A stretch of 64,000 nucleotides of DNA from Macrostomum lignano. Lineage: Eukaryota. The first letter of the stretch is position 1. The number at the start of each line of letters is the position of its first letter. The translations under genes were made by a program, and so were the position numbers. Positions 5,201 to 55,700 of the stretch are shown here, one piece after another. The notes under the pieces were generated by a model. It saw nothing but the letters and a program-made list of their open reading frames with translations, did no database searches and was not told the origin of the DNA. The stretch lies in the NCBI GenBank assembly GCA_002269645.1, contig NIVC01000387.1, forward strand, positions 439,392 to 503,391, read 5' to 3'.

Positions 5201-5767
5201 CCTAGTGGGGGTTGTAGCCTAGTGGGCGGTTGTAGCCTAGTGGGGGTTGTAGCCAAGGGGGGTTGTAGCCTAGTGGGGGTTGTAGCCTAGTGGGGGTTGT
5301 AGCCTAGTGGGCGGTTGTAGCCTAGTGGGCGGTTGTAGCCTAGTGGGCGGTTGTAGCCTAGTTGGGGTTGTAGCCTAGTTGGGGTTGTAGCCTAGTGGGG
5401 GTTGTAGCCTAGTGGGCGGTTGTAGCCTAGTGGGGGTTGTAGCCTAGTTGGGGTTGTAGCCTAGTGGGGGTTGTAGCCTAGTGGGGGTTGTAGCCTAGTG
5501 GGGGTTGTAGCCTAGTGGGCGGTTGTAGCCTAGTTGGGGTTGTAGCCTAGTTGGGGTTGTAGCCTAGTTGGGGTTGTAGCCTAGTGGGCGGTTGTAGCCT
5601 AGTGGGGGTTGTAGCCTAGTGGGCGGTTGTAGCCTAGTTGGGGTTGTAGCCTAGTTGGGGTTGTAGCCTAGTGGGGGTTGTAGCCTAGTGGGTTGTAGCC
5701 TAGTGGGGGTTGTAGCCTAGTGGGGTTGTAGCCTAGTGGGGGTTGTAGCCTAGTGGGGTTGTAGCCT
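2214..5767. repeat. 16/17-bp G-rich minisatellite (GGGGGGTTGTAGCCTA / GTGGGGGTTGTAGCCTA), about 215 copies
   Basis: Direct periodicity. The unit contains TAGCCTAGTGG, which matches the Pol III A-box consensus. Confidence 0.95.
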
Positions 5768-11380: not shown

Positions 11381-11452
11381 AAATGCTACTCCATCAGCCT
11401 CAAGATCTATAAATTTTAGAAAGTCAGTCAAGCAGCCAGTCGCAGAACTCAC

Positions 11453-33356: not shown

Positions 33357-36225
33357 TTTGAGAGAAACGGTTCTAATATAATAGTACGATTACAACTGAC
33401 TTTACAAAATTAGTAACCAGCTGCAAAACTGCCGAAGTTAAATTAGAAAGTTAAATTCAGACACAATGTTAATTAAGAGTAGGATTAAATAAATGAATAA
33501 GTATAGGTGACTATGACACTATTTAAATAATGTGATTTAACTAGCCTGTGTTTTTACCGACTTTAAATTATCGCATACAAGATAAAAAATTTTTTTACCG
33601 ACACTTACTTTAATTTATTTAACTGCCTAAACATATTTAGAAGCAAAAGCTTTAATAGTTAGCACTTAGCTTTTGTCTCTGGTTTTACTTATATTTGTTT
33701 AGCATAGAGTCGTGAATACCGGCAATTTAAGTTCTTAATATAAAAAGAGCGACGTTAAATCGACGAAGTGAAAGTCTTTACCGTAAAAAGATCTATAATC
33801 CTCTTTGATAAGAAAATTATATCTAATAATCCAGAATACAAATTTTGCTCATTAATTTTAACTTTTACGATAAATATTGTGCATATATTGTGACTGAAAT
33901 GTCACGAAAAAAATAGTATTGACAATTGCATGGGCATAAAGTAATCCTCAAAATAACACATATCTCAACATATATTCAAATTATTTTTCATTATTTTTTA
34001 ACTGCTTTCCCAAGAATTACAAGGAACTAATTCAAAGGCATCGACTATTTGATCGACATCGACTGCAAAAAATGGGCGCAAAGCGAAGTATATTAAAGTT
34101 ATAAATGAGTTTAAAGTCTGAGTTTAAATTCAAGTTTAACTATCAACAGTACTCCTCTAATATGTACTGCGTGGCAACCGTAATTTCAAAAAAGAAATTG
34201 TTCTATCTACAAGTGTTTTTGTTGTGGCACCTATTTTTCATTGATTGGCGTCGGTGCTTAAGAAATGCTGGCGAAAATTCGCCCGTGAAAAAATTTTGCT
34301 GAAGCTTATAAAATTGATGCAAAACACAACAATTATACTAGTTGATATTCTTATATGCGTTTTAAATGAGAAAAAGCGGAAAAAAACTTCCCCACACTTT
34401 CGCCAGCCAGCCAGCATTTTGCCGGCTTTTCGCCAACACTGCAACTGTTTTCTCAGGGTTTTTCGCCTTTTTTTCTCAATAGGGCAAAAACTTAACCGGA
34501 AAATCCACTATAGAAAACGCTCTCAGAAAAAGATACTAAAGAAATACATGTACGCATACATGCATGTACATGAATATACAACACATAGGAAAAAAAGAAA
34601 TTAGTATAGCAATGAGACAGCAACAGCAACTGTATAATTTTAATGCATGCGCTTCTGATACAATTAAGCATTCAGTAAGCAAACCGGTAATTTTAATTTG
34701 ATGCAAGAGGAGGTGCGTTTAGTTCTAGCTGAGGAAGTTAGCAGCAAGAAGACGTGCTTTTTAATCAATTTGATTTTGCGGATGGATGCCCCAGTGTGTA
34801 CGTGCGCATGTTGCCTCAATTTTTCACTAATAGCTGAAGCTTGCTCAGCTGTATACAAAGCTCAGAAAAACAAATCCTGCTTACTATATAAGGCCATGAG
34901 CTGCCGGCGTGCATGGTCTAAGAATTTAATCTCTTTATTCTGTTTTTATGCCCAGTCAAGCTGCGGCAGTTCTCTCGCCCGATCCTCAGCTTGAGCCGGC
35001 TTCCGTCCCCGATCTCTTTTTTTGCCGCGGTTCACCCAACGCCCGTGTGTCGACAAACAGGAATATGAAAACTGAATGCTGATGACTGAAAGAGGAAGGA
35101 ACAGAGGAGACCAACGAATGAGGTCGGAGAAAGAAGAGGAGGAGAGGAGACAGATAGGCCGGGAGCGCATGCACTAGTCGCTCGATTCCCTGTCCCCATC
35201 CGTCAGGACTGGGGGAGGAGGCTGGCTGGACGTGAGCTGGGCCTCGGGGAGGTTTCAGAGTCCAGTGGGCGGCTGTCGGCTCCAGATAGTCGGAAGGTGC
35301 GGGAAAGGGAGAGAGATATTGGGGCAGAGAAATCGGACTCGAAGGCAGCGCGCTTTCTCCCATCCTGCTCCCGACCGGCATTCCATTCGCCCTCCCCCAG
35401 AGCCTACACCCTCCCGACCGACCTCACCTGCAGCGCACAGATGAGCCCATAAGCTCGTCTCAGCCATCCGTGGCCTCTCCTGCAGCCCAGTTTCCTCCGC
35501 AGCTCGCCTGCGCAAGCTTCCAAAATCTCAGAGCCCGTGTTGCTCTCTCAAACATCGTGACAGTTGCACCGCACAGCAATCATGGAGCGCTCCAGCGTGA
35601 CAACAACACCAGAAACAGTGAGAGCAAGCCCTGATCTTACTGAGCAAACCTGAGCTCTGAGTTCGCTAATCTTTTGTCGCAAATCCTAATTTTATTCTGT
35701 TCTTCACTTTTGAGTCAAAAATGTTTGTGCTCAGACGGGAGTGCATCAGATTTCAAATGGTTCAGCTCAGCCTTGCCAAGAGCTAATTTTAACAGAAATA
35801 TAAAGCTGTTCAAGGCAGGGCTAAAGCCTGCCTGCTTCGGTCGCTACATCTTGCATCTGAGAACAAGCACGCTGTCCTCCCGCCCCCCCCCTCCCTCCTC
35901 CGAGGCTGAAGGGATTCGATTCCCTAAAGGATTTGGATCTCTCGCAATGCAGACATTGGCATCAAATTTTAATCGCAAAGGACCTCCCTCCCTAGCTCGC
36001 CGTGGCTATCTCTGATGACAGCCTCTCTGTTCCTCATCACTGTTGCTGCCCGCCTGATCTTATCCCCAGCTCTTAATCCCAGTATATTCCCCTTTAGAAT
36101 AATCTAGTTACACATGACTTGCCTAATTTTCCCATTTCCGATGCAGCCGCTCTTGAGCTGTGAAAGCGGCTGAATTCGGATTTCGGTGCACCGAAAATTG
36201 TTGAATGGAAATCCAGCTGGCCCGC

Positions 36226-39200
36226 TCGCAATGATCAGCATAAACAGATTGATGAGCTGTAGGAAACCGAGACTCAATTCCGCTTGCAATGATCAGCATA
36301 AACAGATTGATGAGCTGTAGGAAACCGAGACTCAATTCCGCTCGCAATGATCAGCATAAACAGATTGATGAGCTGTAGGAAACCGAGACTCAATTCCGCT
36401 TGCAATGATCAGCATAAACAGATTGATGAGCTGTAGGAAACCGAGACTCAATTCCGCTTGCAATGATCAGCATAAACAGATTGATGAGCTGTAGGAAACC
36501 GAGACTCAATTCCGCTTGCAATGATCAGCATAAACAGATTGATGAGCTGTAGGAAACCGAGACTCAATTCCGCTCGCAATGATCAGCATAAACAGATTGA
36601 TGAGCTGTAGGAAACTGAGACTCAATTCCGCTTGCAATGATCAGCATAAACAGATTGATGAGCTGTAGGAAACCGAGACTCAATTCCGCTTGCAATGATC
36701 AGCATAAACAGATTGATGAGCTGTAGGAAACCGAGACTCAATTCCGCTTGCAATGATCAGCATAAACAGATTGATGAGCTGTAGGAAACCGAGACTCAAT
36801 TCCGCTCGCAATGATCAGCATAAACAGATTGATGAGCTGTAGGAAACTGAGACTCAATTCCGCTTGCAATGATCAGCATAAACAGATTGATGAGCTGTAG
36901 GAAACTGAGACTCAATTCCGCTCGCAATGATCAGCATAAACAGATTGATGAGCTGTAGGAAACCGAGACTCAATTCCGCTTGCAATGATCAGCATAAACA
37001 GATTGATGAGCTGTAGGAAACTGAGACTCAATTCCGCTTGCAATGATCAGCATAAACAGATTGATGAGCTGTAGGAAACTGAGACTCAATTCCGCTCGCA
37101 ATGATCAGCATAAACAGATTGATGAGCTGTAGGAAACCGAGACTCAATTCCGCTTGCAATGATCAGCATAAACAGATTGATGAGCTGTAGGAAACCGAGA
37201 CTCAATTCCGCTCGCAATGATCAGCATAAACAGATTGATGAGCTGTAGGAAACCGAGACTCAATTCCGCTCGCAATGATCAGCATAAACAGATTGATGAG
37301 CTGTAGGAAACTGAGACTCAATTCCGCTTGCAATGATCAGCATAAACAGATTGATGAGCTGTAGGAAACCGAGACTCAATTCCGCTTGCAATGATCAGCA
37401 TAAACAGATTGATGAGCTGTAGGAAACCGAGACTCAATTCCGCTTGCAATGATCAGCATAAACAGATTGATGAGCTGTAGGAAACCGAGACTCAATTCCG
37501 CTTGCAATGATCAGCATAAACAGATTGATGAGCTGTAGGAAACTGAGACTCAATTCCGCTTGCAATGATCAGCATAAACAGATTGATGAGCTGTAGGAAA
37601 CCGAGACTCAATTCCGCTTGCAATGATCAGCATAAACAGATTGATGAGCTGTAGGAAACCGAGACTCAAATCCGCTCGCAATGATCAGCATAAACAGATT
37701 GATGAGCTGTAGGAAACCGAGACTCAATTCCGCTCGCAATGATCAGCATAAACAGATTGATGAGCTGTAGGAAACCGAGACTCAAATCCGCTCGCAATGA
37801 TCAGCATAAACAGATTGATGAGCTGTAGGAAACTGAGACTCAATTCCGCTCGCAATGATCAGCATAAACAGATTGATGAGCTGTAGGAAACCGAGACTCA
37901 ATTCCGCTCGCAATGATCAGCATAAACAGATTGATGAGCTGTAGGAAACCGAGACTCAATTCCGCTCGCAATGATCAGCATAAACAGATTGATGAGCTGT
38001 AGGAAACCGAGACTCAATTCCGCTCGCAATGATCAGCATAAACAGATTGATGAGCTGTAGGAAACCGAGACTCAAATCCGCTCGCAATGATCAGCATAAA
38101 CAGATTGATGAGCTGTAGGAAACTGAGACTCAATTCCGCTCGCAATGATCAGCATAAACAGATTGATGAGCTGTAGGAAACCGAGACTCAATTCCGCTCG
38201 CAATGATCAGCATAAACAGATTGATGAGCTGTAGGAAACCGAGACTCAATTCCGCTCGCAATGATCAGCATAAACAGATTGATGAGCTGTAGGAAACCGA
38301 GACTCAATTCCGCTCGCAATGATCAGCATAAACAGATTGATGAGCTGTAGGAAACCGAGACTCAATTCCGCTCGCAATGATCAGCATAAACAGATTGATG
38401 AGCTGTAGGAAACCGAGACTCAATTCCGCTCGCAATGATCAGCATAAACAGATTGATGAGCTGTAGGAAACCGAGACTCAATTCCGCTCGCAATGATCAG
38501 CATAAACAGATTGATGAGCTGTAGGAAACCGAGACTCAATTCCGCTCGCAATGATCAGCATAAACAGATTGATGAGCTGTAGGAAACCGAGACTCAAATC
38601 CGCTCGCAATGATCAGCATAAACAGATTGATGAGCTGTAGGAAACTGAGACTCAATTCCGCTCGCAATGATCAGCATAAACAGATTGATGAGCTGTAGGA
38701 AACTGAGACTCAATTCCGCTTGCAATGATCAGCATAAACAGATTGATGAGCTGTAGGAAACCGAGACTCAATTCCGCTTGCAATGATCAGCATAAACAGA
38801 TTGATGAGCTGTAGGAAACTGAGACTCAATTCCGCTCGCAATGATCAGCATAAACAGATTGATGAGCTGTAGGAAACTGAGACTCAATTCCGCTCGCAAT
38901 GATCAGCATAAACAGATTGATGAGCTGTAGGAAACCGAGACTCAATTCCGCTTGCAATGATCAGCATAAACAGATTGATGAGCTGTAGGAAACCGAGACT
39001 CAATTCCGCTCGCAATGATCAGCATAAACAGATTGATGAGCTGTAGGAAACTGAGACTCAATTCCGCTTGCAATGATCAGCATAAACAGATTGATGAGCT
39101 GTAGGAAACCGAGACTCAATTCCGCTCGCAATGATCAGCATAAACAGATTGATGAGCTGTAGGAAACCGAGACTCAATTCCGCTTGCAATGATCAGCATA

Positions 39201-39411
39201 AACAGATTGATGAGCTGTAGGAAACCGAGACTCAATTCCGCTCGCAATGATCAGCATAAACAGATTGATGAGCTGTAGGAAACCGAGACTCAATTCCGCT
39301 CGCAATGATCAGCATAAACAGATTGATGAGCTGTAGGAAACTGAGACTCAATTCCGCTCGCAATGATCAGCATAAACAGATTGATGAGCTGTAGGAAACC
39401 GAGACTCAATT
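36226..39411. repeat. 58-bp minisatellite (GCTCGCAATGATCAGCATAAACAGATTGATGAGCTGTAGGAAACCGAGACTCAATTCC), about 55 copies
   Basis: Direct periodicity with three recurring variant sites. Confidence 0.97.
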
Positions 39412-39556
39412 CAGAGTCAGGTTGAAACCAATACGAATTCTCGTAAATTCTAAAAAAGCTGGAAACAATTATTTCAAGGGGTCATTTCTCTGTCACAAGC
39501 ACTTCATTTCCCTTCATGCGTCTCAGAAAATCACGCTGGACGCCAATGGGGACGGC

Positions 39557-40048
39557 ATGTCCGTGTTCCAAAATCCTCGCTTCCGCCTGTGCGCTCACCA
39601 CTTGAATGCCGGCAGCCAGGCGGCCGAAGCCATGCCAATGTACAACTTCTTCGTGTGCCTCAACGACTCGCGCTATACGAAGATCTTCAGCGACATGGAG
39701 CGGGGCATCAGCGACCGGCGCGACCGCGGCCTGCCGATCCTGGCCGCCATCATCGGAGTCTACTGTTTATTCATCCTGTTCGGTGCGTTCGGAAATGGCC
39801 TCGTCATGCTGACTGTGTGCCGCAACCGGGCCATGCGCACCGCCCGGAACCTCTTCATATTCAACCTGGCCCTGTCCGACTTCATTCTGTGCCTCTTCAC
39901 GCAGCCGCTCAACCTGCTGCGCCTGTTCCCCGACTACATCAGCTGGGAATTTGGCGAGCTTCTCTGCAAAGTGGTCAACACTCTCACCGGTCTCAATATG
40001 TTTGTGTCCACGTTTTCGATTACAGCCATCGCACTGGACCGCTTCCAG
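39557..40048 (+). CDS. NPY/NPF-receptor-like class A GPCR exon 1 (N-terminus, TM1-TM3)
   Basis: GN..V, MRTARNLFIFNLALSD, LCK, DRF motifs; CAG/GTGAGT donor, phase 0. Start codon is the first in-frame ATG and is tentative. Confidence 0.9.
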
Positions 40049-40728
40049 GTGAGTAGATGATGGAGTGGCTGTTTAGACTGTCTGATTGAGGGTTGGCCAA
40101 CGCCAACTTGTATTGAGCCTTGGTGAATTCTGCGCCACTATGTTCTCAAAGGCAACCAGTTAGGTTCTCCATTGGTGGATGCATGCAGAGGATTGAGTGT
40201 CCCAAAGGTCCTTCGAACTCAAGAGCAGCCTCTATCCCTCAGTCTCCATGCTCATGCGATCAAAGCCAGCCAGTTCTTGAGTGGCACTTTAACTTCAATA
40301 CAAAGAGAATAGTTTGAGGTTGGAAATGAGAGGTCAGCTTCTACGAGCATTGTAACGAGACTTTTAGGACATTAGGACCTTATGAACTAAAAGTAGCAAA
40401 GAGCCTAAGCTATTATTGCTGCATGCTCATATGCTAGTGACGATTCGAGTCCAAGAAAGTTCGATAGCAGAAAACAGTGAGTCAGTCAGTTCATATTTCG
40501 TTGTCCAGTGCGAGATTCCTTGCCATCAACGGGAAAGGCTGTTCATTTTACAATGCGTTCGCACGGCCTTTCTCATTATTTGTGACTGATACGATGACAG
40601 CGTATTGTGGATGGTGGGCAGGGAAATTCTTATTCTTAGACTAAGAAAAAATCCGAGAAAAACTGTCCAACTAAAAACCCTATATACTACTACCGAGATA
40701 TCTGGATTTGAAACAAGTATATGTTTAA

Positions 40729-43487
40729 CAGCAGAAAGACCATGGGGGTGTATTTCAAGTACACACATTTTTCCTTTGTCTGTATCTCCGAAAATATTCA
40801 ACCAATTGCCATGAAAATCCAGAACACGGGCTAAAATTTTCCACTCTATTCAATGGAGCAACTTTGAGAATCACAAAAAATCGGCATCGTCGAGATATTC
40901 AACGATTCTCCTCGGGGTGTCTGGTGACAAAAAAACACCAACATTAGCAATTTTTTCTGCTCACAAAATCTCACAAAACCGTCGGGACCTTCGATTCAAC
41001 AAAAGCACCCGATCGGCATCTCAGAGGCGGCTGCGTTCCCAAAACTGAAATGGAATAATCCTCTTCTGCATCCAGCATTCAGTCAGTAGACACAATCGGT
41101 GAATGAAATGGACGATGGCTACTCTCTAGGCTGACCTTTAGACATACAGGCGACCTTCAGGACCTTCAACGGAGTGCCACCTTGCGGCCCCGACGAGCTG
41201 GCACCCCCAACATCGTGATTTTTCTATCAAGGCACCAAACCAGACATGTCTGCATATTATACAATGGTCCTGCACCATGTTCAGCATTCAGCTCTGTCTG
41301 GACGACCTTCAGGACCTTCAACGGGGTGCCACCACGCGGCCCCGATGAGGTGGCACCCCCAACATCGTTTTTATATTAAGACACCAGACCAGGCATGTCT
41401 GCATATTATACAATGGTCCTGCACCTTGTTAAATTGGAGAGTTACAGATTTAACTCGCGACTGAAAAATATAAAATATATTATTTGTAAAAAATGATATT
41501 ACAGCATGTCAAAAATGATATTACAGCATGTCAAAAATGATGGTACAGCAAATTCAAAGCAGAAGGATCTGAACACCGACACGTAGACACAAAAGCGGAG
41601 TCAATTTTCATCGCAGTGTGTCTTCGGCAAATTCCTTCGTCACACATGCAACACTTCCTTGTTGTCGCACTCAAAGCTTCTCGTCCTTTGACTTTTGTCT
41701 CGCGCGTGTTGCACAGCGCTTTCTGCCACCAACTGACACCACAGCCGCCGCTTCGCGTGCCTGTTCCTTCATTTGCTCGTCGTTGAGTCGACAACCTGCG
41801 AGCTGGAACATCAGCCTGTGATGATTGGACAGATTTTGAAGAAGAGCGGCCGATTGCGAGCGCTCCTCGATCAGAGGTTGCAGAAGTTGCGCAGCTGCCT
41901 TGCGCTGGAACTCGTTGCGATAGTTCGGCGAGGGGCAGAGCTCCGGGTGCGCCAGTCTCCAGATAGCAGCGGCATTCACAGCTGCTATGTTGAGTATGCC
42001 GCCGGAGAAGATTGCCTTCTCGCATGATGAGTCGGAATTTCGCTTGCAGTCGGATGTGCGGAAAATCCTGTTACAGGTGTCCGTGCCACTCTTGGTAGAA
42101 TTGTAGAACGTGCCTATTTCTACAGGCTTGCCATTGGGAAGCAATTTTCTGTCGTGATGCATGGTGGACAGCAACATCACGTTTCGGCCCGCCTTGGGGC
42201 AGTTGGACACACACGTGAGTTCCTCAGAAAACCGGAATTCGCTCGTGTGTGGAGCCATGGTTTTAGTTGTATTCTTGAGATCGGCTGGCAGGCCACCACA
42301 AGTGCGCATCACTGTTCCAAGAAACGAGAATCCCATTTCTCGGTACAAGTGATTGACCAGCGCAGGACTCGAGAAGAATCTGTCACATGTGATGTTGTAC
42401 CAGTGTCCTTTGAATGGATCAGCCAAGCGGCAAACAACTTGCTCATCACTCCACACCTCGGAGCCCTTGGCCAGCCGAGAATCAAATCCCTGTGATGCAA
42501 AAGTAGTGGACAGCAGTGTCCTTTGCCAGTGCATATTTCCGCATTGAACACATAGCGGATGTCCATGTCATCCTGAATCTCTGGATTCCCAGCCGATGTC
42601 AGCAGGAACAGCTTGGCACCATTGCGACGGGCTTCTCCTTCAGAAAGACCGTGAAGTCACAATCCACACCCCAGTAGACAACCAGAGTTTCGTCGACGCA
42701 GAGGTAGGCCCGAAAAGGACAGGATGGCTCAGCTGGCTGACAAAGGTGTCGGATGCCGTAGAATTTGTCCGTTGTGGCAGTCCGCTGACGATGTTCGGCA
42801 GTTTCGAATTTAACATGGTGCTGGACCATTGTATAATATGCAGACATGCCTGGTTTGGTGTCTAGATAGAAAAATCACAATGTGGGGGGTGCCAGCTCGT
42901 CGGGGCCGCAAGGTGGCACTCCGTTGAAGGTCCCGAAGGTCGCCGTATGTCTACAGGTCAGCCTAGAGAGTCGCCATCGTCCATTTCATTCACCGATTAT
43001 GTCTAATGACTGAATGCTGCATGCAGAAGAGGATTATTCCATTTCAGTTTTGGGAACGCAGCCGTCTCTGAGATGCCGATCGGGTGCTTTTGTTGAAGCT
43101 TGAAGGTCCCGACGGTCACCGCCGATGCTCCAGACGGAGATGAAGGGGACCCTGGTGCCTAGGATGCTGAGAACAAAGGCTTCTGCGACAGATGGACCCA
43201 GATTACTGAGCCAATATGGATATACCATAAAGGTTTATACAGTGTAGTGTTGGTTGTCCTTGCCACCAGTGTCTTAGACAAGAATCGTTGAATATCTCGA
43301 CGATGCTGACGTCGGATGACTTTGAAAGTTAGTTCGTCGGAAAGGGCGGAAAATTTTGATCTATATGGTGGACTTTTACGAAAATCGGTAATTCGGTTTG
43401 CGAGATATCGTGAAATGGGTCGTGTGTATTTGTAATACACCCCCGTGGTCTTTCCCCATGGGGAAAAATAGCGTGGTCTTTCTACTG
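40729..43487 (-). mobile_element. Decayed piggyBac-family transposon with about 700-bp inverted arms, in GPCR intron 1
   Basis: TTAA at 40725-40728 and 43488-43491. Terminal 16-mers CAGCAGAAAGACCATG and CAGTAGAAAGACCACG (2 mismatches). Arms about 40729-41435 and 42807-43487 are inverted homologues. Confidence 0.88.
41535..42847 (-). pseudogene. piggyBac (PGBD, DDE_Tnp_1_7) transposase pseudogene, frameshifted
   Basis: DKF..IR.L...LCVDETL...G..C.F......KP; ITCDRFFSS..L; LGTV; VMLLSTMH; KP...FYNSTKSGTD; LNIAAVNA; C-terminal KCCMCDEGICRRH in another frame. Split over three reading frames. Confidence 0.9.
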
Positions 43488-43628
43488 TTAAGGGAAGTCA
43501 TCCAAGAACTGAGCATCGAACACACTACAAAGAGAAGGGAAAATTTAGGTGCCCAAAGCTTGGATTATACAGCATGACAGTTCATACTCTATCAGCCACA
43601 ACTTTACATGCCTCATCTTAACCTGCAG

Positions 43629-44105
43629 GTGATCGTGTACCCAACTCGCACCAGGATGGAGCGGCGCACCATGGCTCTGTGCCTGCTGGCCATCTGGGGC
43701 GCCGCTGGCATGATGGCCAGCCCGCTGTTTCTGTTCGCCACCATCGAGCAGAACCGGCTGCAAAATCAAAAGCCGCTGAACATCTGCAGCGAGACAACTT
43801 CGCGAATTTTCATCCGATATGCTAAGCTAGCTTACGGCAGCGGTGTGATGGTGGTGCAGTACCTGGTACCTCTGGGCATTGTGGTGGCTGCCTATGCCAG
43901 AATCTGCGTCCGCCTGCAGCACCGGATGCGCAGCCTGAAGCAGCGGGGCGACCACCGGTCCGCCTACCAGGCCAACCGAGAAGCCGCCGAGGCCGTGCGG
44001 CAGCGCCGGGCCAACCTGCTGCTGGTCACCATCGCGGTGGTGTTCAGCCTGTCCTGGCTGCCCCTGACCATCATCAACATTGTGCACGACGTTCGCGTCC
44101 TGAAA
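43629..44105 (+). CDS. NPY/NPF-receptor-like GPCR exon 2 (TM4-TM6)
   Basis: VIVYP continues DRFQ; IW....ASPLF, C.E, VVQYLVPL.IV...Y.RI, FSLSWLPL; 477 nt, phase 0/0. Confidence 0.92.
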
Positions 44106-45601: not shown

Positions 45602-46737
45602 CCTGTTGAGCCATTCTTCATCTCGTTCGCCATTTTGCTCTGCTGTACTCGAAGTAAAGGAAGCAAACTTTTGAGCTGAATTTTTTAAAGACAACTAATT
45701 AATAAGAACATTGCGACCAAAATCCACTCCTCATCGACCACCTGGTTCGCTGCTTGAGGGGCTTGACTACTCGTATCTGGATTCAATGTGAAAGTTGAGA
45801 CGGACCCTCTGTCTCGCGAATTCGTATTTTATCGGAATTTTTCCCGCGTCAAATGCACCACAATGTTACGCACAGAGCACGCGTATTATTATTACTGTAG
45901 TGTACTTTTTCCGAAGCAACGTCCTGGCAAGACACATCATTGACTCATACTCCTTAACTCCATCACGATATTTATCTTGACATACTCGATGTCTACCATA
46001 AATCTCGCTTTTAGTGTTGTCATGTCTGTTGGTTAAACTGCTTCATGTGTTCCTCCCCTTGTAATACAGCCACCTTCTTCAGTCCTTTACTGAAAAAAAT
46101 TACTAATTTCGTTGTGAACTGTTCTCAACAGAATTTGTTGTGCAATCGGCAGTGGCACTTAACCTACGTTGCACCTGTCTGTAACCTGAAATTAATTTTG
46201 TCCCCCGTCCGTTTCGACTGAGCCCGGGGGCCTCAGCAGGTAGGAAATTCCCTTTTTCATTTTTCCTGCTTTTCCTAACTGACAAGCTTAAAAACTGCGA
46301 AAATGGAAATGGCGAGAAATTAAGCGGTGTGACTCGAAACAGCATTGATGGTCACAGTTTATCAATTCTCGACCATCAATTTTCAGCAAATGGTTCAAGA
46401 GTACATTGCCTGCGCGCAATACCTTAAAAGATATTTGCGTACGAGCTATCAGGCGTCTCCTGATATGCAACACACTCGCTTACTCAGTATCTGCTCCCTG
46501 TTTTATATGCCCTATACTAATTTTTGCGTACAAGACGCGCGTAAATTTTCATTACATGTATTAAGTTTGTGTTATGCATGCATTGTCATGTCTATGTGCT
46601 TGACTTGAGTGTTTTTAATAAGCCGCGACCTAAAAGAGCAAGAATGAGCGAGTCGCGGCTGCGGGATAAAATATAAAGTGCGGTCATCACTCGCTTCAAT
46701 TGAGCATTAGGGACTTCGCCTTTGATGCTGACGATCT

Positions 46738-49700
46738 AGAAGAGTCTATCGAGACTGGAATCATCATAGAAGAGTCTATCGAGACTGGAATCATCATAGA
46801 AGAGTCTATCGAGACTGAATCATAGTCATAGAAGAGTCTATCGAGACTGGAATCATAGTCATAGAAGAGTCTATCGAGACTGAAATCATCATAGAAGAGT
46901 CTATCGAGACTGGAATCTTAGTCATAGAAGAGTCTATCGAGACTGAAATCATCATAGAAGAGTCTATCGAGACTGGAATCATAGTCATAGAAGAGTCTAT
47001 CGAGACTGGAATCATAGTCATAGAAGAGTCTATCGAGACTGAAATCATAGTCATAGAAGAGTCTATCGAGACTGGAATCATAGTCATAGAAGAGTCTATC
47101 GAGACTGGAATCATAGTCATAGAAGAGTCTATCGAGACTGGAATCTTAGTCATAGAAGAGTCTATCGAGACTGAAATCATCATAGAAGAGTCTATCGAGA
47201 CTGAATCATAGTCATAGAAGAGTCTATCGAGACTGGAATCATAGTCATAGAAGAGTCTATCGAGACTGGAATCTTAGTCATAGAAGAGTCTATCGAGACT
47301 GAAATCATCATAGAAGAGTCTATCGAGACTGGAATCATCATAGAAGAGTCTATCGAGACTGAAATCATCATAGAAGAGTCTATCGAGACTGGAATCATAG
47401 TCATAGAAGAGTCTATCGAGACTGGAATCATAGTCATAGAAGAGTCTATCGAGACTGAAATCATCATAGAAGAGTCTATCGAGACTGGAATCATAGTCAT
47501 AGAAGAGTCTATCGAGACTGGAATCATAGTCATAGAAGAGTCTATCGAGACTGGAATCATAGTCATAGAAGAGTCTATCGAGACTGGAATCATAGTCATA
47601 GAAGAGTCTATCGAGACTGGAATCATAGTCATAGAAGAGTCTATCGAGACTGAATCATCATAGAAGAGTCTATCGAGACTGGAATCATAGTCATAGAAGA
47701 GTCTATCGAGACTGAATCATCATAGAAGAGTCTATCGAGACTGGAATCTAGTCATAGAAGAGTCTATCGAGACTGGAATCTAGTCATAGAAGAGTCTATC
47801 GAGACTGGAATCATCATAGAAGAGTCTATCGAGACTGGAATCTAGTCATAGAAGAGTCTATCGAGACTGGAATCATAGTCATAGAAGAGTCTATCGAGAC
47901 TGGAATCATCATAGAAGAGTCTATCGAGACTGAATCATCATAGAAGAGTCTATCGAGACTGGAATCATAGTCATAGAAGAGTCTATCGAGACTGGAATCA
48001 TCATAGAAGAGTCTATCGAGACTGGAATCATAGTCATAGAAGAGTCTATCGAGACTGGAATCATAGTCATAGAAGAGTCTATCGAGACTGGAATCATCAT
48101 AGAAGAGTCTATCGAGACTGAATCATCATAGAAGAGTCTATCGAGACTGGAATCATAGTCATAGAAGAGTCTATCGAGACTGGAATCATCATAGAAGAGT
48201 CTATCGAGACTGGAATCATAGTCATAGAAGAGTCTATCGAGACTGGAATCATAGTCATAGAAGAGTCTATCGAGACTGGAATCATCATAGAAGAGTCTAT
48301 CGAGACTGGAATCATAGTCATAGAAGAGTCTATCGAGACTGGAATCATAGTCATAGAAGAGTCTATCGAGACTGGAATCATAGTCATAGAAGAGTCTATC
48401 GAGACTGGAATCATAGTCATAGAAGAGTCTATCGAGACTGGAATCATAGTCATAGAAGAGTCTATCGAGACTGGAATCATCATAGAAGAGTCTATCGAGA
48501 CTGGAATCATCATAGAAGAGTCTATCGAGACTGGAATCATAGTCATAGAAGAGTCTATCGAGACTGGAATCATAGTCATAGAAGAGTCTATCGAGACTGG
48601 AATCAGTCATAGAAGAGTCTATCGAGACTGGAATCATCATAGAAGAGTCTATCGAGACTGGAATCATCATAGAAGAGTCTATCGAGACTGGAATCATCAT
48701 AGAAGAGTCTATCGAGACTGGAATCATAGTCATAGAAGAGTCTATCGAGACTGGAATCATAGTCATAGAAGAGTCTATCGAGACTGGAATCATAGTCATA
48801 GAAGAGTCTATCGAGACTGGAATCATAGTCATAGAAGAGTCTATCGAGACTGGAATCATAGTCATAGAAGAGTCTATCGAGACTGGAATCATAGTCATAG
48901 AAGAGTCTATCGAGACTGGAATCATAGTCATAGAAGAGTCTATCGAGACTGGAATCATAGTCATAGAAGAGTCTATCGAGACTGAATCATCATAGAAGAG
49001 TCTATCGAGACTGGAATCATAGTCATAGAAGAGTCTATCGAGACTGGAATCAGTCATAGAAGAGTCTATCGAGACTGGAATCATAGTCATAGAAGAGTCT
49101 ATCGAGACTGGAATCATAGTCATAGAAGAGTCTATCGAGACTGGAATCAGTCATAGAAGAGTCTATCGAGACTGGAATCATAGTCATAGAAGAGTCTATC
49201 GAGACTGGAATCATAGTCATAGAAGAGTCTATCGAGACTGAATCATCATAGAAGAGTCTATCGAGACTGGAATCATAGTCATAGAAGAGTCTATCGAGAC
49301 TGGAATCATAGTCATAGAAGAGTCTATCGAGACTGGAATCATCATAGAAGAGTCTATCGAGACTGGAATCATAGTCATAGAAGAGTCTATCGAGACTGGA
49401 ATCATAGTCATAGAAGAGTCTATCGAGACTGGAATCATAGTCATAGAAGAGTCTATCGAGACTGGAATCATAGTCATAGAAGAGTCTATCGAGACTGGAA
49501 TCATCATAGAAGAGTCTATCGAGACTGGAATCATCATAGAAGAGTCTATCGAGACTGGAATCATAGTCATAGAAGAGTCTATCGAGACTGGAATCATAGT
49601 CATAGAAGAGTCTATCGAGACTGGAATCATAGTCATAGAAGAGTCTATCGAGACTGGAATCATAGTCATAGAAGAGTCTATCGAGACTGGAATCATCATA

Positions 49701-52700
49701 GAAGAGTCTATCGAGACTGGAATCATAGTCATAGAAGAGTCTATCGAGACTGGAATCATAGTCATAGAAGAGTCTATCGAGACTGGAATCATAGTCATAG
49801 AAGAGTCTATCGAGACTGGAATCATAGTCATAGAAGAGTCTATCGAGACTGGAATCATAGTCATAGAAGAGTCTATCGAGACTGGAATCATAGTCATAGA
49901 AGAGTCTATCGAGACTGGAATCATAGTCATAGAAGAGTCTATCGAGACTGGAATCATCATAGAAGAGTCTATCGAGACTGGAATCAGTCATAGAAGAGTC
50001 TATCGAGACTGGAATCATAGTCATAGAAGAGTCTATCGAGACTGGAATCATAGTCATAGAAGAGTCTATCGAGACTGGAATCATAGTCATAGAAGAGTCT
50101 ATCGAGACTGGAATCATAGTCATAGAAGAGTCTATCGAGACTGGAATCATAGTCATAGAAGAGTCTATCGAGACTGGAATCATAGTCATAGAAGAGTCTA
50201 TCGAGACTGGAATCATAGTCATAGAAGAGTCTATCGAGACTGGAATCATAGTCATAGAAGAGTCTATCGAGACTGGAATCATCATAGAAGAGTCTATCGA
50301 GACTGGAATCATAGTCATAGAAGAGTCTATCGAGACTGGAATCATCATAGAAGAGTCTATCGAGACTGGAATCTTAGTCATAGAAGAGTCTATCGAGACT
50401 GGAATCATAGTCATAGAAGAGTCTATCGAGACTGGAATCATCATAGAAGAGTCTATCGAGACTGGAATCATAGTCATAGAAGAGTCTATCGAGACTGGAA
50501 TCATAGTCATAGAAGAGTCTATCGAGACTGGAATCATCATAGAAGAGTCTATCGAGACTGGAATCATCATAGAAGAGTCTATCGAGACTGGAATCATAGT
50601 CATAGAAGAGTCTATCGAGACTGGAATCATCATAGAAGAGTCTATCGAGACTGGAATCATAGTCATAGAAGAGTCTATCGAGACTGGAATCATAGTCATA
50701 GAAGAGTCTATCGAGACTGGAATCATCATAGAAGAGTCTATCGAGACTGGAATCATCATAGAAGAGTCTATCGAGACTGGAATCATAGTCATAGAAGAGT
50801 CTATCGAGACTGGAATCAGTCATAGAAGAGTCTATCGAGACTGGAATCATCATAGAAGAGTCTATCGAGACTGGAATCATAGTCATAGAAGAGTCTATCG
50901 AGACTGGAATCATAGTCATAGAAGAGTCTATCGAGACTGGAATCATCATAGAAGAGTCTATCGAGACTGGAATCATAGTCATAGAAGAGTCTATCGAGAC
51001 TGGAATCATAGTCATAGAAGAGTCTATCGAGACTGGAATCATAGTCATAGAAGAGTCTATCGAGACTGGAATCATAGTCATAGAAGAGTCTATCGAGACT
51101 GGAATCATAGTCATAGAAGAGTCTATCGAGACTGGAATCATAGTCATAGAAGAGTCTATCGAGACTGGAATCATCATAGAAGAGTCTATCGAGACTGGAA
51201 TCATAGTCATAGAAGAGTCTATCGAGACTGGAATCATAGTCATAGAAGAGTCTATCGAGACTGGAATCATAGTCATAGAAGAGTCTATCGAGACTGGAAT
51301 CATCATAGAAGAGTCTATCGAGACTGGAATCATCATAGAAGAGTCTATCGAGACTGGAATCATCATAGAAGAGTCTATCGAGACTGGAATCATAGTCATA
51401 GAAGAGTCTATCGAGACTGGAATCATCATAGAAGAGTCTATCGAGACTGGAATCATAGTCATAGAAGAGTCTATCGAGACTGGAATCATAGTCATAGAAG
51501 AGTCTATCGAGACTGGAATCATAGTCATAGAAGAGTCTATCGAGACTGGAATCATAGTCATAGAAGAGTCTATCGAGACTGGAATCATAGTCATAGAAGA
51601 GTCTATCGAGACTGGAATCATCATAGAAGAGTCTATCGAGACTGGAATCATAGTCATAGAAGAGTCTATCGAGACTGGAATCATCATAGAAGAGTCTATC
51701 GAGACTGGAATCATAGTCATAGAAGAGTCTATCGAGACTGGAATCATAGTCATAGAAGAGTCTATCGAGACTGGAATCATAGTCATAGAAGAGTCTATCG
51801 AGACTGGAATCATAGTCATAGAAGAGTCTATCGAGACTGGAATCATAGTCATAGAAGAGTCTATCGAGACTGGAATCATCATAGAAGAGTCTATCGAGAC
51901 TGGAATCATAGTCATAGAAGAGTCTATCGAGACTGGAATCATAGTCATAGAAGAGTCTATCGAGACTGGAATCATAGTCATAGAAGAGTCTATCGAGACT
52001 GGAATCATCATAGAAGAGTCTATCGAGACTGGAATCATAGTCATAGAAGAGTCTATCGAGACTGGAATCATAGTCATAGAAGAGTCTATCGAGACTGGAA
52101 TCATAGTCATAGAAGAGTCTATCGAGACTGGAATCATCATAGAAGAGTCTATCGAGACTGGAATCATCATAGAAGAGTCTATCGAGACTGGAATCATAGT
52201 CATAGAAGAGTCTATCGAGACTGGAATCATCATAGAAGAGTCTATCGAGACTGGAATCATAGTCATAGAAGAGTCTATCGAGACTGGAATCATAGTCATA
52301 GAAGAGTCTATCGAGACTGGAATCATAGTCATAGAAGAGTCTATCGAGACTGGAATCATCATAGAAGAGTCTATCGAGACTGGAATCATAGTCATAGAAG
52401 AGTCTATCGAGACTGGAATCATAGTCATAGAAGAGTCTATCGAGACTGGAATCATCATAGAAGAGTCTATCGAGACTGGAATCATAGTCATAGAAGAGTC
52501 TATCGAGACTGGAATCATAGTCATAGAAGAGTCTATCGAGACTGGAATCATAGTCATAGAAGAGTCTATCGAGACTGGAATCATAGTCATAGAAGAGTCT
52601 ATCGAGACTGGAATCATAGTCATAGAAGAGTCTATCGAGACTGGAATCATAGTCATAGAAGAGTCTATCGAGACTGGAATCATAGTCATAGAAGAGTCTA

Positions 52701-55700
52701 TCGAGACTGGAATCATAGTCATAGAAGAGTCTATCGAGACTGGAATCATCATAGAAGAGTCTATCGAGACTGGAATCATAGTCATAGAAGAGTCTATCGA
52801 GACTGGAATCATAGTCATAGAAGAGTCTATCGAGACTGGAATCATAGTCATAGAAGAGTCTATCGAGACTGGAATCATAGTCATAGAAGAGTCTATCGAG
52901 ACTGGAATCATCATAGAAGAGTCTATCGAGACTGGAATCATAGTCATAGAAGAGTCTATCGAGACTGGAATCATAGTCATAGAAGAGTCTATCGAGACTG
53001 GAATCATAGTCATAGAAGAGTCTATCGAGACTGGAATCATAGTCATAGAAGAGTCTATCGAGACTGGAATCATCATAGAAGAGTCTATCGAGACTGGAAT
53101 CATAGTCATAGAAGAGTCTATCGAGACTGGAATCATAGTCATAGAAGAGTCTATCGAGACTGGAATCATCATAGAAGAGTCTATCGAGACTGGAATCATA
53201 GTCATAGAAGAGTCTATCGAGACTGGAATCATAGTCATAGAAGAGTCTATCGAGACTGGAATCATAGTCATAGAAGAGTCTATCGAGACTGGAATCATAG
53301 TCATAGAAGAGTCTATCGAGACTGGAATCATAGTCATAGAAGAGTCTATCGAGACTGGAATCATCATAGAAGAGTCTATCGAGACTGGAATCATAGTCAT
53401 AGAAGAGTCTATCGAGACTGGAATCATAGTCATAGAAGAGTCTATCGAGACTGGAATCATAGTCATAGAAGAGTCTATCGAGACTGGAATCATCATAGAA
53501 GAGTCTATCGAGACTGGAATCATAGTCATAGAAGAGTCTATCGAGACTGGAATCATAGTCATAGAAGAGTCTATCGAGACTGGAATCATAGTCATAGAAG
53601 AGTCTATCGAGACTGGAATCATAGTCATAGAAGAGTCTATCGAGACTGGAATCATAGTCATAGAAGAGTCTATCGAGACTGGAATCATAGTCATAGAAGA
53701 GTCTATCGAGACTGGAATCATAGTCATAGAAGAGTCTATCGAGACTGGAATCATAGTCATAGAAGAGTCTATCGAGACTGGAATCATAGTCATAGAAGAG
53801 TCTATCGAGACTGGAATCATAGTCATAGAAGAGTCTATCGAGACTGGAATCATAGTCATAGAAGAGTCTATCGAGACTGGAATCATAGTCATAGAAGAGT
53901 CTATCGAGACTGGAATCATAGTCATAGAAGAGTCTATCGAGACTGGAATCATAGTCATAGAAGAGTCTATCGAGACTGGAATCATAGTCATAGAAGAGTC
54001 TATCGAGACTGGAATCATAGTCATAGAAGAGTCTATCGAGACTGGAATCATAGTCATAGAAGAGTCTATCGAGACTGGAATCATAGTCATAGAAGAGTCT
54101 ATCGAGACTGGAATCATAGTCATAGAAGAGTCTATCGAGACTGGAATCATAGTCATAGAAGAGTCTATCGAGACTGGAATCATAGTCATAGAAGAGTCTA
54201 TCGAGACTGGAATCATAGTCATAGAAGAGTCTATCGAGACTGGAATCATAGTCATAGAAGAGTCTATCGAGACTGGAATCATAGTCATAGAAGAGTCTAT
54301 CGAGACTGGAATCATCATAGAAGAGTCTATCGAGACTGGAATCATAGTCATAGAAGAGTCTATCGAGACTGGAATCATAGTCATAGAAGAGTCTATCGAG
54401 ACTGGAATCATAGTCATAGAAGAGTCTATCGAGACTGGAATCATAGTCATAGAAGAGTCTATCGAGACTGGAATCATAGTCATAGAAGAGTCTATCGAGA
54501 CTGGAATCATAGTCATAGAAGAGTCTATCGAGACTGGAATCATAGTCATAGAAGAGTCTATCGAGACTGGAATCATAGTCATAGAAGAGTCTATCGAGAC
54601 TGGAATCATAGTCATAGAAGAGTCTATCGAGACTGGAATCATAGTCATAGAAGAGTCTATCGAGACTGGAATCATAGTCATAGAAGAGTCTATCGAGACT
54701 GGAATCATAGTCATAGAAGAGTCTATCGAGACTGGAATCATAGTCATAGAAGAGTCTATCGAGACTGGAATCATAGTCATAGAAGAGTCTATCGAGACTG
54801 GAATCATCATAGAAGAGTCTATCGAGACTGGAATCATAGTCATAGAAGAGTCTATCGAGACTGGAATCATAGTCATAGAAGAGTCTATCGAGACTGGAAT
54901 CATAGTCATAGAAGAGTCTATCGAGACTGGAATCATAGTCATAGAAGAGTCTATCGAGACTGGAATCATAGTCATAGAAGAGTCTATCGAGACTGGAATC
55001 ATAGTCATAGAAGAGTCTATCGAGACTGGAATCATAGTCATAGAAGAGTCTATCGAGACTGGAATCATAGTCATAGAAGAGTCTATCGAGACTGGAATCA
55101 TAGTCATAGAAGAGTCTATCGAGACTGGAATCATAGTCATAGAAGAGTCTATCGAGACTGGAATCATAGTCATAGAAGAGTCTATCGAGACTGGAATCAT
55201 AGTCATAGAAGAGTCTATCGAGACTGGAATCATAGTCATAGAAGAGTCTATCGAGACTGGAATCATAGTCATAGAAGAGTCTATCGAGACTGGAATCATA
55301 GTCATAGAAGAGTCTATCGAGACTGGAATCATAGTCATAGAAGAGTCTATCGAGACTGGAATCATCATAGAAGAGTCTATCGAGACTGGAATCATAGTCA
55401 TAGAAGAGTCTATCGAGACTGGAATCATAGTCATAGAAGAGTCTATCGAGACTGGAATCATAGTCATAGAAGAGTCTATCGAGACTGGAATCATAGTCAT
55501 AGAAGAGTCTATCGAGACTGGAATCATAGTCATAGAAGAGTCTATCGAGACTGGAATCATAGTCATAGAAGAGTCTATCGAGACTGGAATCATAGTCATA
55601 GAAGAGTCTATCGAGACTGGAATCATAGTCATAGAAGAGTCTATCGAGACTGGAATCATAGTCATAGAAGAGTCTATCGAGACTGGAATCATAGTCATAG

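Follow-up and report, generated by a model that had tools for sequence, protein, structure and literature searches.

Two-tier inverted arms of a piggyBac-type transposon relic in a GPCR intron of Macrostomum lignano

A decayed piggyBac-type element in the genome of the flatworm Macrostomum lignano raises the question of how long inverted arms came to bound a transposon of a superfamily with far shorter canonical terminal inverted repeats (TIRs). An earlier note on this DNA explained the arms by a single event: the element would have lost its 3' end and gained in its place an inverted ~700-bp copy of the 5' end, the first part of the transposase gene included. The follow-up analysis favors, at about even odds (a probability of roughly 0.5), a dead non-autonomous piggyBac-like element in which native imperfect sub-terminal repeats were supplemented with a younger inverted duplication originating from faulty repair.

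The element and its setting

The analyzed window (64,000 nucleotides of the record NIVC01000387.1) belongs to the single PacBio-based assembly GCA_002269645.1 and provided the one copy studied. The element spans positions 40729–43487 (2,759 bp) and, as had been noticed earlier, is directly abutted on both sides by TTAA, read in the sequence at 40725–40728 and 43488–43491. This target-site duplication, together with the piggyBac-like tips and a remnant of the DDE_Tnp_1_7 transposase, bears out the assignment to the piggyBac superfamily.

The element lies in antisense orientation within a 3,580-nt intron (40049–43628, plus strand; GT at 40049, AG at 43628) of a gene coding for an NPF/NPY-receptor-like GPCR, where the earlier reading had placed it. 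The exon encoding TM1–3 (39659–40048, plus strand) ends with ALDRFQ, and the exon encoding TM4–6 (plus strand) starts at 43629 with VIVYPTRT; the intron separates the TM3 exon from the TM4 exon. The paralog P0006 aligns to both exons with 65–69% identity, which supports the exon pair. With the element removed, the intron sequence at the insertion site would read AAGTATATGT-TTAA-GGGAAGTCATCC.

No other copy of the element was found within the 64-kb window, and the Rfam scan of the 39–45 kb region revealed no RNA family. Exact-motif scans of metagenome and prokaryote-genome collections (with an arm 25-mer, the tip motif, and the 26-nt island described below) yielded 0 matches; neither the 287-aa transposase frame nor the GPCR exon-2 frame was recorded upon exact look-up in public assemblies. 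In the literature searched, neither a fold-back piggyBac nor any endogenous piggyBac-like element of M. lignano is described; with the present element, a previously undescribed piggyBac-like lineage comes to light in this species.

Two-tier arms and the truncated transposase gene

The inverted homology of the arms runs over 550–700 bp (total arm length 553–710 bp) around a 1.37-kb unique core (1,378 bp), confirming that the arms are far longer than the canonical piggyBac TIRs. They were also correctly perceived as close in the inner part and diverged in the outer part: the inverted match of the inner arms (40978–41281 vs. 42812–43116) amounts to 94.4% over 306 nt (E = 5e-134), and that of the outer arms (40734–40909 vs. 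43281–43454) to 69% over 178 nt (E = 2e-12). Considered as tiers, the inner one (~305 bp) is 95.4% identical (289/303; 3 gap columns) and the outer one 65.4% identical (161/246; 128 gap columns). The step between the tiers is sharp (Fisher p = 1.5e-20), the arm divergence differing ~ten-fold between the outer and the inner part.

The left outer arm (40729–40977) is composed of the compact tip CAGCA-GAAAGACCATG-GGGGTGTATTTCAAGTACACAC and an imperfect sub-terminal inverted repeat, and the right outer arm (43117–43487) carries, on the minus strand, the extended tip CAGTA-GAAAGACCACG-17 nt-GAAAGACCACG-GGGGTGTATTAC...; the alignment of the two (65% identity) is interrupted by gaps of 58, 39 and 28 nt. 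Substitutions in the outer tier are represented by transitions and transversions in a 50:35 ratio, and this tier holds a perfect 26-nt island (0.0014 expected); the tips form a 33-nt inverted repeat with 91% identity. The comparison shows the outer-tier homology to be real but old; the conserved island and tip fit a constrained end sequence better than uniform decay.

The left inner arm (40978–41281, comprising units 1 and 2) begins inside the 22-nt motif CGGYGACCKTCRGGACCTTCAA, and its inverted counterpart occupies 42812–43116 on the right. This boundary motif, repeated 2–3 times in the arms, is complete in the right arm only. Besides it, there is one 152-bp duplication, whereas TRF detected no tandem arrays over the arms. 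The duplication is the tandem one proposed before for the left arm (41151–41281 and 41303–41430, 152-nt spacing, 89% identity). The second copy of unit 2 (41303–41438) carries the inner junction GTTAAATT and shares 89% identity with the first copy and 87% with the right arm. The window contains the 26-mer CATGTCTGCATATTATACAATGGTCC, quoted earlier as an example of the similarity, exactly three times (41245 and 41394 on the plus strand, 42823 on the minus strand; 0 expected). The copies are separated by a 21-nt filler (41282–41302, CAGCATTCAGCTCTGTCTGGA), which, judging from the alignment, looks like a condensed piece of unit 1.

The core harbors a transposase pseudogene of the DDE_Tnp_1_7 (piggyBac) type (41580–42847, minus strand), which corresponds to residues 177–568 of its closest relative, the 580-aa protein P0126. 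The identity to the latter is 40%, and no protein was found above that; a word-indexed protein search with the stitched transposase retrieved five relatives, all at most 33% identical and none from M. lignano. The stitched frames match Pfam PF13843 with E = 1.3e-18 over profile positions 88–348 of 349, and a 22-member family HMM scores them at 193.7 and 31.6 bits, starting at state 199. Three or more frameshifts disrupt the remnant, the longest open stretch of which comprises 287 codons (41671–42534), and the Cys-rich C-terminal motif is found in a different frame at ~41618–41660. The first ~175–198 positions of the transposase are missing; the homology sets in at the right arm's inner edge, with the BLAST and HMM matches reaching 42835–42847. 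A complete ORF with the N-terminal DNA-binding/dimerization region is absent; hence, the element is not autonomous. Downstream of the remnant, a 3'UTR-like stretch contains three tandem 22-nt repeats (41485–41550); a relic of the original 3' terminus sought in 41425–41600 was not found. The contig of P0126, which may be a transcript, contains neither terminal repeats nor arms and gives no information on the ends of the family.

According to the earlier note, the transposase gene had its decayed 5' part in the right arm and an antisense copy of this part in the left arm. The analysis gives this proposal no support: N-terminal homology (HMM states 1–198, i.e., the missing ~175–198 positions) was undetectable in any frame of 39900–44000, and within the arms all four tests (Pfam, the family HMM, tblastn with P0126, and a frameshift-tolerant profile alignment) were negative. 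The last of them scored the arms at 14.9 against a null of 15.6 ± 2.0; its positive control reached 56.8 against 22.1 ± 3.4, ~10 s.d. above the shuffle mean. The MSAYYTMVQHHV stretch, on which the coding reading had relied, adds 3.8 bits only, which is matched by 5% of random extensions (p = 0.05), so the right inner arm displays no detectable coding homology save for the marginal 8–12 codons at its inner end. With the first recognizable coding sequence appearing only at the right arm's inner edge, both arms are, as far as can be read from the sequence, essentially non-coding.

Several candidate N-terminal pieces were discarded. The eyeballed right-arm motifs FSALSDEL...RRDIQRF, W..VAEAF..ILG, and VWSIGGDR gave no gain over shuffled controls. 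A putative ~260-nt intron (GGTGAC...CTATCTAG) joining these motifs in frame to MSAYY was negative by HMM, tblastn, and profile alignment. A plus-strand match to residues 85–122 of P0126 over the right TTAA (43440–43553, E = 0.014) was taken as chance, because the family profile gives it no support.

Differentiated tips and the age of the tiers

The element resembles the canonical piggyBac of Trichoplusia ni in the TTAA duplication, the DDE_Tnp_1_7 transposase with a C-terminal Cys-rich motif, and the tip, CAGTAGAAAGACC here and CCCTAGAAAGATA in T. ni. Unlike the latter, whose inverted repeats measure 13 + 19 bp, it features 550–700 bp of inverted homology and a truncated and frameshifted transposase. 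The extended end of the T. ni piggyBac is located downstream of the gene; here it is upstream.

The right tip corresponds to the left one enlarged by an 11-nt duplication and a 17-nt spacer: GAAAGACCACG occurs twice, 17 nt apart, in the right tip and once in the left one, and the spacer includes the palindrome TTTCCCCATGGGGAAA. A comparable design is known from the piggyBac ends LE35 and RE63, where likewise one end represents the other with a ~17-nt insertion and a short duplication, and only the asymmetric pair is active with the native transposase (PMC7351741). By this analogy, the two tips are best read as a differentiated left/right pair of piggyBac ends. Both tips (CAGCAG on the left, CAGTAG on the right) start with C, as does the published piggyBac tip motif C[C/A/T][C/A/T][T/G/A][T/A/G][T/G/A] (PMC5381638). 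The G at position 3 and, on the left, the C at position 4 fall outside this motif, which counts against the preferred reading.

The differentiated tips oppose the notion of two 5' ends: differing by a 28-nt duplication-plus-spacer, they are not copies of one end. Replacement of the 3' end by a 5' copy in one event is further contradicted by the ~ten-fold divergence gap between the tiers (65% vs. 95% identity), where a single event predicts even divergence. The outer divergence corresponds to 0.23 substitutions per site per arm and the inner one to 0.024; the probability that a 287-codon frame stays free of stops is 0.003 at the former level and 0.43 at the latter. The outer divergence predates the death of the copy; the frame would not have survived at that level, which speaks against a single-event origin as well. 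The one-event scenario does account for the homology of the arms over their whole length, for its termination 8–12 codons within possible coding sequence (MSAYYTMVQHHVKF), and for the 22-nt motif being whole in the right arm only, as if the left arm were the copy. However, support for reading the last 12 codons as coding is marginal (p = 0.05), and no N-terminal homology shows in the arms, even though the remainder of the gene is readily recognized; overall, this scenario appears improbable.

A fold-back chimeric PacBio read is another conceivable source of inverted arms, the window being taken from a single PacBio-based assembly. Such chimeras give near-identical arms with little or no spacer, whereas the arms here differ by 5% and 35%, with 28–58-nt indels, a tandem duplication, and the 1.37-kb unique core, and a clean TTAA duplication bounds the whole structure. 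An assembly artefact is, accordingly, a far-fetched explanation.

Sub-terminal repeats, proposed repair, and possible composite insertion

The statement that piggyBac repeats are only 13–19 bp long holds for typical TIRs and is incomplete: in one structural group, SG2, the TIR is accompanied by imperfect sub-terminal inverted repeats of 11–400 bp (Bouallegue et al. 2017, PMC5381638). The outer arms described here (249 and 371 bp, 65.4% identity) fit a TIR running into such repeats. At the same time, the arms as a whole (553–710 bp) exceed the published maximum, possess a second tier of 95% identity, and belong to a non-autonomous element.

In the preferred explanation, the element would have inserted at TTAA, antisense, into the GPCR intron, and the old sub-terminal inverted repeats (~250 bp on the left and 370 bp on the right, 65%) would already have been present in the active family. 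The younger ~305-bp inverted duplication (95%), situated just inside the old repeats, would have been made, most likely, by error-prone, template-switching repair of the element, either as abortive gap repair after excision or as repair templated by the other arm; we infer this mechanism and the order of events from the anatomy. The distinction between features native to the family and those private to this copy is likewise drawn by inference, from one copy in one assembly.

Abortive gap repair is the route by which rearranged non-autonomous Ds derivatives arise from Ac. They share with the present element an internal coding deletion, filler, duplicated or inverted breakpoint pieces, and retained termini. 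Compared with Ds, the mechanism is suggested here by the anatomy; derivatives of this kind are not known from piggyBac-type elements, whose excision is precise. The hints on the direction of copying also conflict: the complete 22-nt motif in the right arm suggests right-to-left copying, and the loss of the N-terminus in one step would be explained only by left-to-right copying.

Alternatively, the whole 550–700-bp arms could be native long inverted repeats, their inner part being homogenized by gene conversion and the N-terminal coding sequence deleted in the present copy. The imperfect sub-terminal repeats of up to 400 bp known in piggyBac-like elements (PMC5381638) agree with this possibility, as do 11 occurrences of the RGACCWY motif, all in the arms, which would be expected of ends rich in binding sites. 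The triplet comparison of the tandem copy and the two arms (unique changes 2/10/5, p = 0.04–0.06) points in the same direction: it suggests that the tandem copy arose before the arms diverged from each other, which requires a later exchange between the arms and counts against the repair reading. On the other hand, the endpoint of the deletion would have to coincide exactly with the repeat's inner edge, the 8–14 codon-like bases next to the truncated gene on the right are found in the left arm as well, and the arms are longer than the published maximum. Judged from one copy, the native-arm reading is unlikely.

The inner edges of the arms deserve separate consideration. Both of them sit at TTAA (41429–41432 on the left; 42811–42814 on the right, where the transposase remnant reads GTT AAA, codons V K), the junction sequences being …CACCTTGTTAAATTGGAGAG and …CACCATGTTAAATTCGAAAC. 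Each arm starts with C and finishes with G beside TTAA, and the inner GGACCAT, 9 nt from TTAA, mirrors the terminal AGACCAT, 8 nt from the outer TTAA. An internal TTAA junction had been named beforehand as a sign of two independent opposite insertions; it is present at both inner edges, its significance being ambiguous. Under the repair reading, the inner-edge TTAAs, the C...G ends, and the mirrored GACCAT are coincidences and count against it.

They are expected if two inverted ~680-bp non-autonomous piggyBac-type units, each with the outer tip at one end and CAAGGTGCAGGACCAT at the other, entered two TTAAs of an older transposase relic (one in the V–K codons, one in the 3'UTR), after which the outer tips carried the entire block to the GPCR intron. 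All four arm edges do abut TTAA (40725, 41429, 42811, 43488) in the form TTAA-C...G-TTAA, and the inner tips, CATGGT and CAAGGT, match the published tip motif. The transposase homology starts, within statistical resolution, at the inner TTAA, the MSAYY... stretch of the arm being no better than 5% of random sequences or than the outside flank joined at TTAA. The loss of the N-terminus and of the relic's own ends would be explained in one step. A precedent is provided by the coral CMITE and CMITE-IN elements, TTAA-bounded piggyBac-related non-autonomous units which insert into each other's TTAA, form arrays and compound mobile elements, and show, as here, uneven conservation along the unit (Wang et al. 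2010, PMC2872659). The coral units are, however, short, direct or nested, and present in many copies, unlike the two inverted ~680-bp arms around a transposase fragment in one copy.

Several observations make such a composite doubtful. The outer and the inner ends of an arm pair poorly (~7/16), whereas the outer tips pair at 91% over 33 nt. Two independent copies should diverge evenly, in contrast to the 65% and 95% identity of the tiers. Moving the block takes two ends of the same type, and the native piggyBac transposase fails on such pairs (PMC7351741), although the outer tips here do differ. A TTAA at the edge is expected by chance in 2–3% of cases, and the one at the right arm is a part of the conserved L-[RK]-F codons. 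Finally, no solo unit was found within the 64-kb window searched.

Two further origins were rejected. The inner 305 bp are not regarded as a nested foreign transposon, its outer edges being devoid of TTAA or a target-site duplication. Insertion of the 1,378-bp core into a palindromic MITE (TTAA on both sides, ends matching 7/10) is improbable in our assessment, as the core consists of a gene fragment truncated at its 5' end and its ends are A...T rather than the C...G of piggyBac.

Hairpin potential and significance

The ability of the arms to form a hairpin, anticipated in the earlier note, was upheld by folding: the arms pair along their whole length in the predicted structure of the element RNA (MFE of −1324 kcal/mol, 446 arm–arm pairs), with perfect helices of 77, 49, 41, 29 and 26 bp. 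The inner-arm duplex alone accounts for −576 kcal/mol vs. −144 ± 9 kcal/mol for shuffles. By this prediction, any transcript passing through the element, GPCR pre-mRNA included, can form a long imperfect hairpin; it would loop out 2.76 kb of the intron, with perfect stems of up to 77 bp.

Hairpin RNA (hpRNA) and other inverted-repeat loci are sources of endogenous siRNAs in plants, flies, worms, and mouse oocytes, and both RNAi and PIWI pathways are active in M. lignano. The present locus shares with hpRNA loci a predicted extended dsRNA, known here from folding; in comparison with them, its stems are interrupted and their outer third is only 65% complementary. Very long inverted repeats are the hallmark of foldback transposons such as Drosophila FB and Galileo (the latter of the P superfamily), which, like this element, combine arms of hundreds of bp with a short unique core, internal repetition, variation in arm length, and the fold-back capacity. 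They belong to another superfamily, and their arms, unlike those described here, consist of tandem sub-repeats. It would be quite a long shot to regard the two-tier long-armed form as a mobile fold-back piggyBac lineage of the flatworm, still movable in trans, with intronic copies serving as hairpin-RNA genes and giving off small RNAs that would repress the family or modulate the host gene.

Under the repair reading, the locus would exemplify stepwise growth of arms on a short-TIR transposon, from old sub-terminal repeats to a young inverted duplication. M. lignano is the one flatworm with stable transgenesis, and the insect piggyBac serves as a vector in this species (PMC8717057); for the stability of such vectors, the piggyBac-type ends native to the genome and any transposase that survives are relevant. 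If other copies share the structure, the known end architecture of piggyBac would extend beyond 400 bp, and the intronic hairpin could be used to probe how a flatworm processes dsRNA. Being a single decayed copy, the element is a curious, if largely ordinary, transposon relic of interest chiefly for annotation: it calls for masking as a transposon and for correction of the GPCR model, which at present skips the TM1–3 exon.

Architecture of the arms and tips

The piggyBac-like insert at 40729-43487 (2,759 bp; hereafter the element) is decayed and represents a new member of the piggyBac superfamily, with two-tier inverted arms of unusual length; the earlier note was right to report a long-armed element here. 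TTAA immediately adjoins both ends (40725-40728 and 43488-43491), as had been claimed, and the arms are indeed alike inside and diverged outward: inverted alignment pairs 40978-41281 with 42812-43116 (306 nt, 94.4% identity, E=5e-134) and 40734-40909 with 43281-43454 (178 nt, 69% identity, E=2e-12). A 26-mer quoted by the note as common to the arms occurs three times (0 expected), and the tandem duplication that it placed in the left arm was recovered at 41151-41281 and 41303-41430 (spacing 152 nt, identity 89%). No further copy of any part of the element was found in the 64-kb window.

The per-window comparison of the arms that had been proposed as a check (a 50-column identity profile) revealed an abrupt step at 40977/40978. 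The outer tier (249 bp left, 371 bp right) is identical at 161 of 246 positions (65.4%), with 128 gap columns stemming from three indels of 28, 58 and 39 nt; in the inner tier (~305 bp), the figures are 289/303 (95.4%) and 3 gap columns (p=1.5e-20, Fisher's exact test). The respective Jukes-Cantor divergences are 0.46 and 0.048 substitutions per site. The outer-arm homology, with a transition:transversion count of 50:35, is real but old. Identity is uneven inside the outer tier, which includes a 33-nt tip at 91% and a perfect 26-nt island, GCATCGTCGAGATATTCAACGATTCT (0.0014 such runs expected).

Read inward from TTAA, the left tip is CAGCA-GAAAGACCATG-GGGGTGTATTTC... and the right tip CAGTA-GAAAGACCACG-CTATTTTTCCCCATGGG-GAAAGACCACG-GGGGTGTATTAC..., the right one differing from the left by an added 17-nt spacer and 11-nt duplication. 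With this difference, the tips are not copies of one end, contrary to the suggested “two 5' ends”. In the T. ni piggyBac, an insertion of 17 bp and a duplication set RE63 apart from LE35, and the native enzyme transposes only the asymmetric end pair (PMC7351741); the tips of the element are asymmetric in the same manner. Its outer arms fit a described structural group of piggyBac-like elements whose sub-terminal inverted repeats are long (11-400 bp) and imperfect (PMC5381638). At 43443-43482 in the right tip, a perfect 16-nt palindrome, TTTCCCCATGGGGAAA, falls within the 17-nt spacer that separates the GAAAGACCACG copies; it could serve for protein binding or could have been left by the process that made the duplication. 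Its left-tip counterpart is CCATGG only. RGACCWY heptamers number 11 in the element, always in the arms and never in the 1.37-kb core (2.7 expected), and GACCTTC occurs 8 times against 0.4 expected (40729-41438 and 42812-43487), both counts being inflated by the fact that each arm duplicates the other. The heptamers face inward in each arm, save for an inverted innermost copy, and could be sub-terminal binding motifs.

Transposase remnant and coding content of the arms

A piggyBac-type transposase remnant lies on the minus strand, from ~42847 to 41580, in three shifted frames. Its Pfam DDE_Tnp_1_7 match (E=1.3e-18) spans only positions 88-348 of the 349-position profile. Among 1.84 billion representative proteins, searched exhaustively, 1,652 relatives were found, the closest being P0126 (580 aa, 40% identical); tblastn with it covers its residues 177-568, the Cys-rich motif of the C-terminus lying in another frame. 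A family HMM built from 22 full-length relatives matches the remnant at states 199-270 and 303-546 only; hence, the first ~175-198 transposase positions are missing, including the conserved block LFF..E...IV..TN...W...E..AFIG.L...G....LW. P0126 is encoded in an intact frame on contig L002 (Logan SRR31628394, 3,624 bp), in which no terminal repeats or element ends were found; it could come from a related animal in which a piggyBac-type gene is expressed or has been domesticated. Exact look-ups of the window proteins in public records and motif scans of public collections gave no matches, a word-indexed protein search with the transposase returned no sister copies, and the literature searched gave no account of endogenous piggyBac-like elements in M. 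lignano or of fold-back piggyBac. Directly downstream of the remnant, an AT-rich stretch (33% GC) contains three tandem 22-nt repeats (TGTCAAAAATGATATTACAGCA; 41485-41550) without counterpart elsewhere in the window.

The earlier note placed the 5' part of the transposase in the right arm. It was detected there neither by Pfam in all frames nor by tblastn with P0126 (both arms), and an N-terminal HMM found no match in six frames of 39900-44000. In a frameshift-tolerant profile alignment, the right arm scored 14.9 (dinucleotide shuffles 15.6±2.0) and the left arm 14.8; the internal coding region, as positive control, scored 56.8 versus 22.1±3.4. Alignments do reach 8-12 codons into the right arm (YTMVQHHV, or MSAY-YTMVQHHV), but this extension gains only 3.8 bits, is equalled by 5% of random extensions and is matched by the outside flank joined at TTAA. 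Therefore, coding sequence in the arms is not supported beyond two or three codons overlapping the junction GTTAAATT, and neither is a fold-back made of two transposase-bearing 5' ends. One further tblastn hit, of P0126 residues 85-122 (where the conserved N-terminal block begins) to 43440-43553 on the plus strand (29% identity, E=0.014), spans the right tip, TTAA and flanking intron; backed by neither the family HMM nor the profile alignment, it is probably due to chance.

Origin and relative ages of the two tiers

The arm homology stops on both sides at GTTAAATT, and an internal TTAA junction, named in the earlier note as a sign against its own reading, is present at both inner edges (41429-41432 and 42811-42814). 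Both arms thus read TTAA-C...G-TTAA, with GGACCAT 9 nt from the inner TTAA mirroring AGACCAT 8 nt from the outer one. The main rival explanation, a composite of two TTAA-bounded units, would predict this arrangement and would also account in one step for the gene starting at TTAA. It is nevertheless rather improbable: within one arm, the match between outer and inner end is poor, whereas the outer tips pair as a normal TIR; two identity tiers are unexpected for two independent copies; the right-arm TTAA simply falls within the conserved L-[RK]-F codons; and a TTAA within a few bases of where a homology block ends arises by chance in a few per cent of cases. An assembly artefact is unlikely, given the diverged arms with indels, the unique 1.37-kb core and the clean target duplication. 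This clean TTAA duplication shows that transposition brought in the structure or a precursor of it.

Under the preferred reading, a single rearranged element, the ancestor would have been an active flatworm piggyBac-like family whose ends were differentiated and whose imperfect sub-terminal repeats measured ~250-370 bp. A single copy may have been rearranged through faulty, template-switching repair: ~305 bp beside one end would have been copied inverted beside the other, the N-terminal third of the gene lost, and the left copy partly tandem-duplicated with a 21-nt filler. The 22-nt motif CGGYGACCKTCRGGACCTTCAA opens the inner arm and each duplicated unit, a placement that fits short-homology-guided switching. 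The right side alone has this boundary motif in full, favouring right-to-left copying; copying from left to right, with the left sub-terminal copy replacing the N-terminus, would explain truncation and duplication in one event.

Had the outer divergence (0.23 substitutions per site per arm) arisen in this dead copy, the 287-codon open piece of its pseudogene would be stop-free with a probability of 0.003, compared with 0.43 at the inner-arm level (0.024 per site). The outer dissimilarity therefore predates the death of this copy; by this estimate, it belongs to the active lineage, and the inner duplication is approximately as old as the gene decay. In a three-way comparison of the two left tandem units and the right unit, the closest pair is the first left unit and the right one (unique changes 2, 10 and 5), suggesting a later exchange between the arms, albeit on small counts (p about 0.04-0.06).

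Host intron, RNA folding and genomic setting

The host gene is a plus-strand rhodopsin-type receptor, nearest to neuropeptide F/Y receptors and 65-67% identical to two M. lignano paralogues. Its TM1-3 exon (39659-40048, ending ...ALDRFQ) is supported by the paralogue P0006 at 69% identity; the intron (3,580 bases, 2,763 of them taken up by the structure described here) begins with GT at 40049 and ends with AG at 43628, and the following exon begins at 43629 with VIVYPTRT. The transposase remnant is antisense to the receptor.

Folded as RNA in the receptor-gene sense, the element has an MFE of -1324 kcal/mol, with 446 predicted arm-arm pairs from 40729:43487 to 41438:42804 and perfect helices of 77, 49, 41, 29 and 26 bp. 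The inner-arm duplex reaches -576 kcal/mol, versus -144±9 with shuffled partners. A long hairpin is physically expected if the intron is transcribed, and it would loop out the insert, bringing the splice sites within about 820 nt. Small RNAs, editing or a splicing effect might follow from such a predicted hairpin; Rfam gave no family match in the element region. Interest in the element would be modest unless genome-wide copies show the long-armed form to be a mobile family or a small-RNA source.

The annotated model BOX15_Mlig003365g1 (P0008, 35582-45601) has a first exon of 12 codons at 35582 (MERSSVTTTPET) and splices directly to 43629. It skips the TM1-3 exon, so the deposited protein lacks three transmembrane helices; this suggests an annotation error or else use of an alternative 5' exon. 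The 30-kb P0008 locus is 100% identical to window 25582-55601, being from the same assembly and hence not an independent check.

The window is the final 64 kb of contig NIVC01000387.1 (Macrostomum lignano, GCA_002269645.1). More than 15 unrelated minisatellite arrays (periods 17-58 nt) crowd 1-27620 and 36222-64000, e.g., a 17-nt unit ×214 (2221-5767), a 36-nt unit ×47 (9678-11381) and, closely upstream of the TM1-3 exon, a 58-nt unit ×55 (36222-39412). A 33-nt satellite (×533, 46737-64000) reaches the contig end and probably caused the assembly to stop there.
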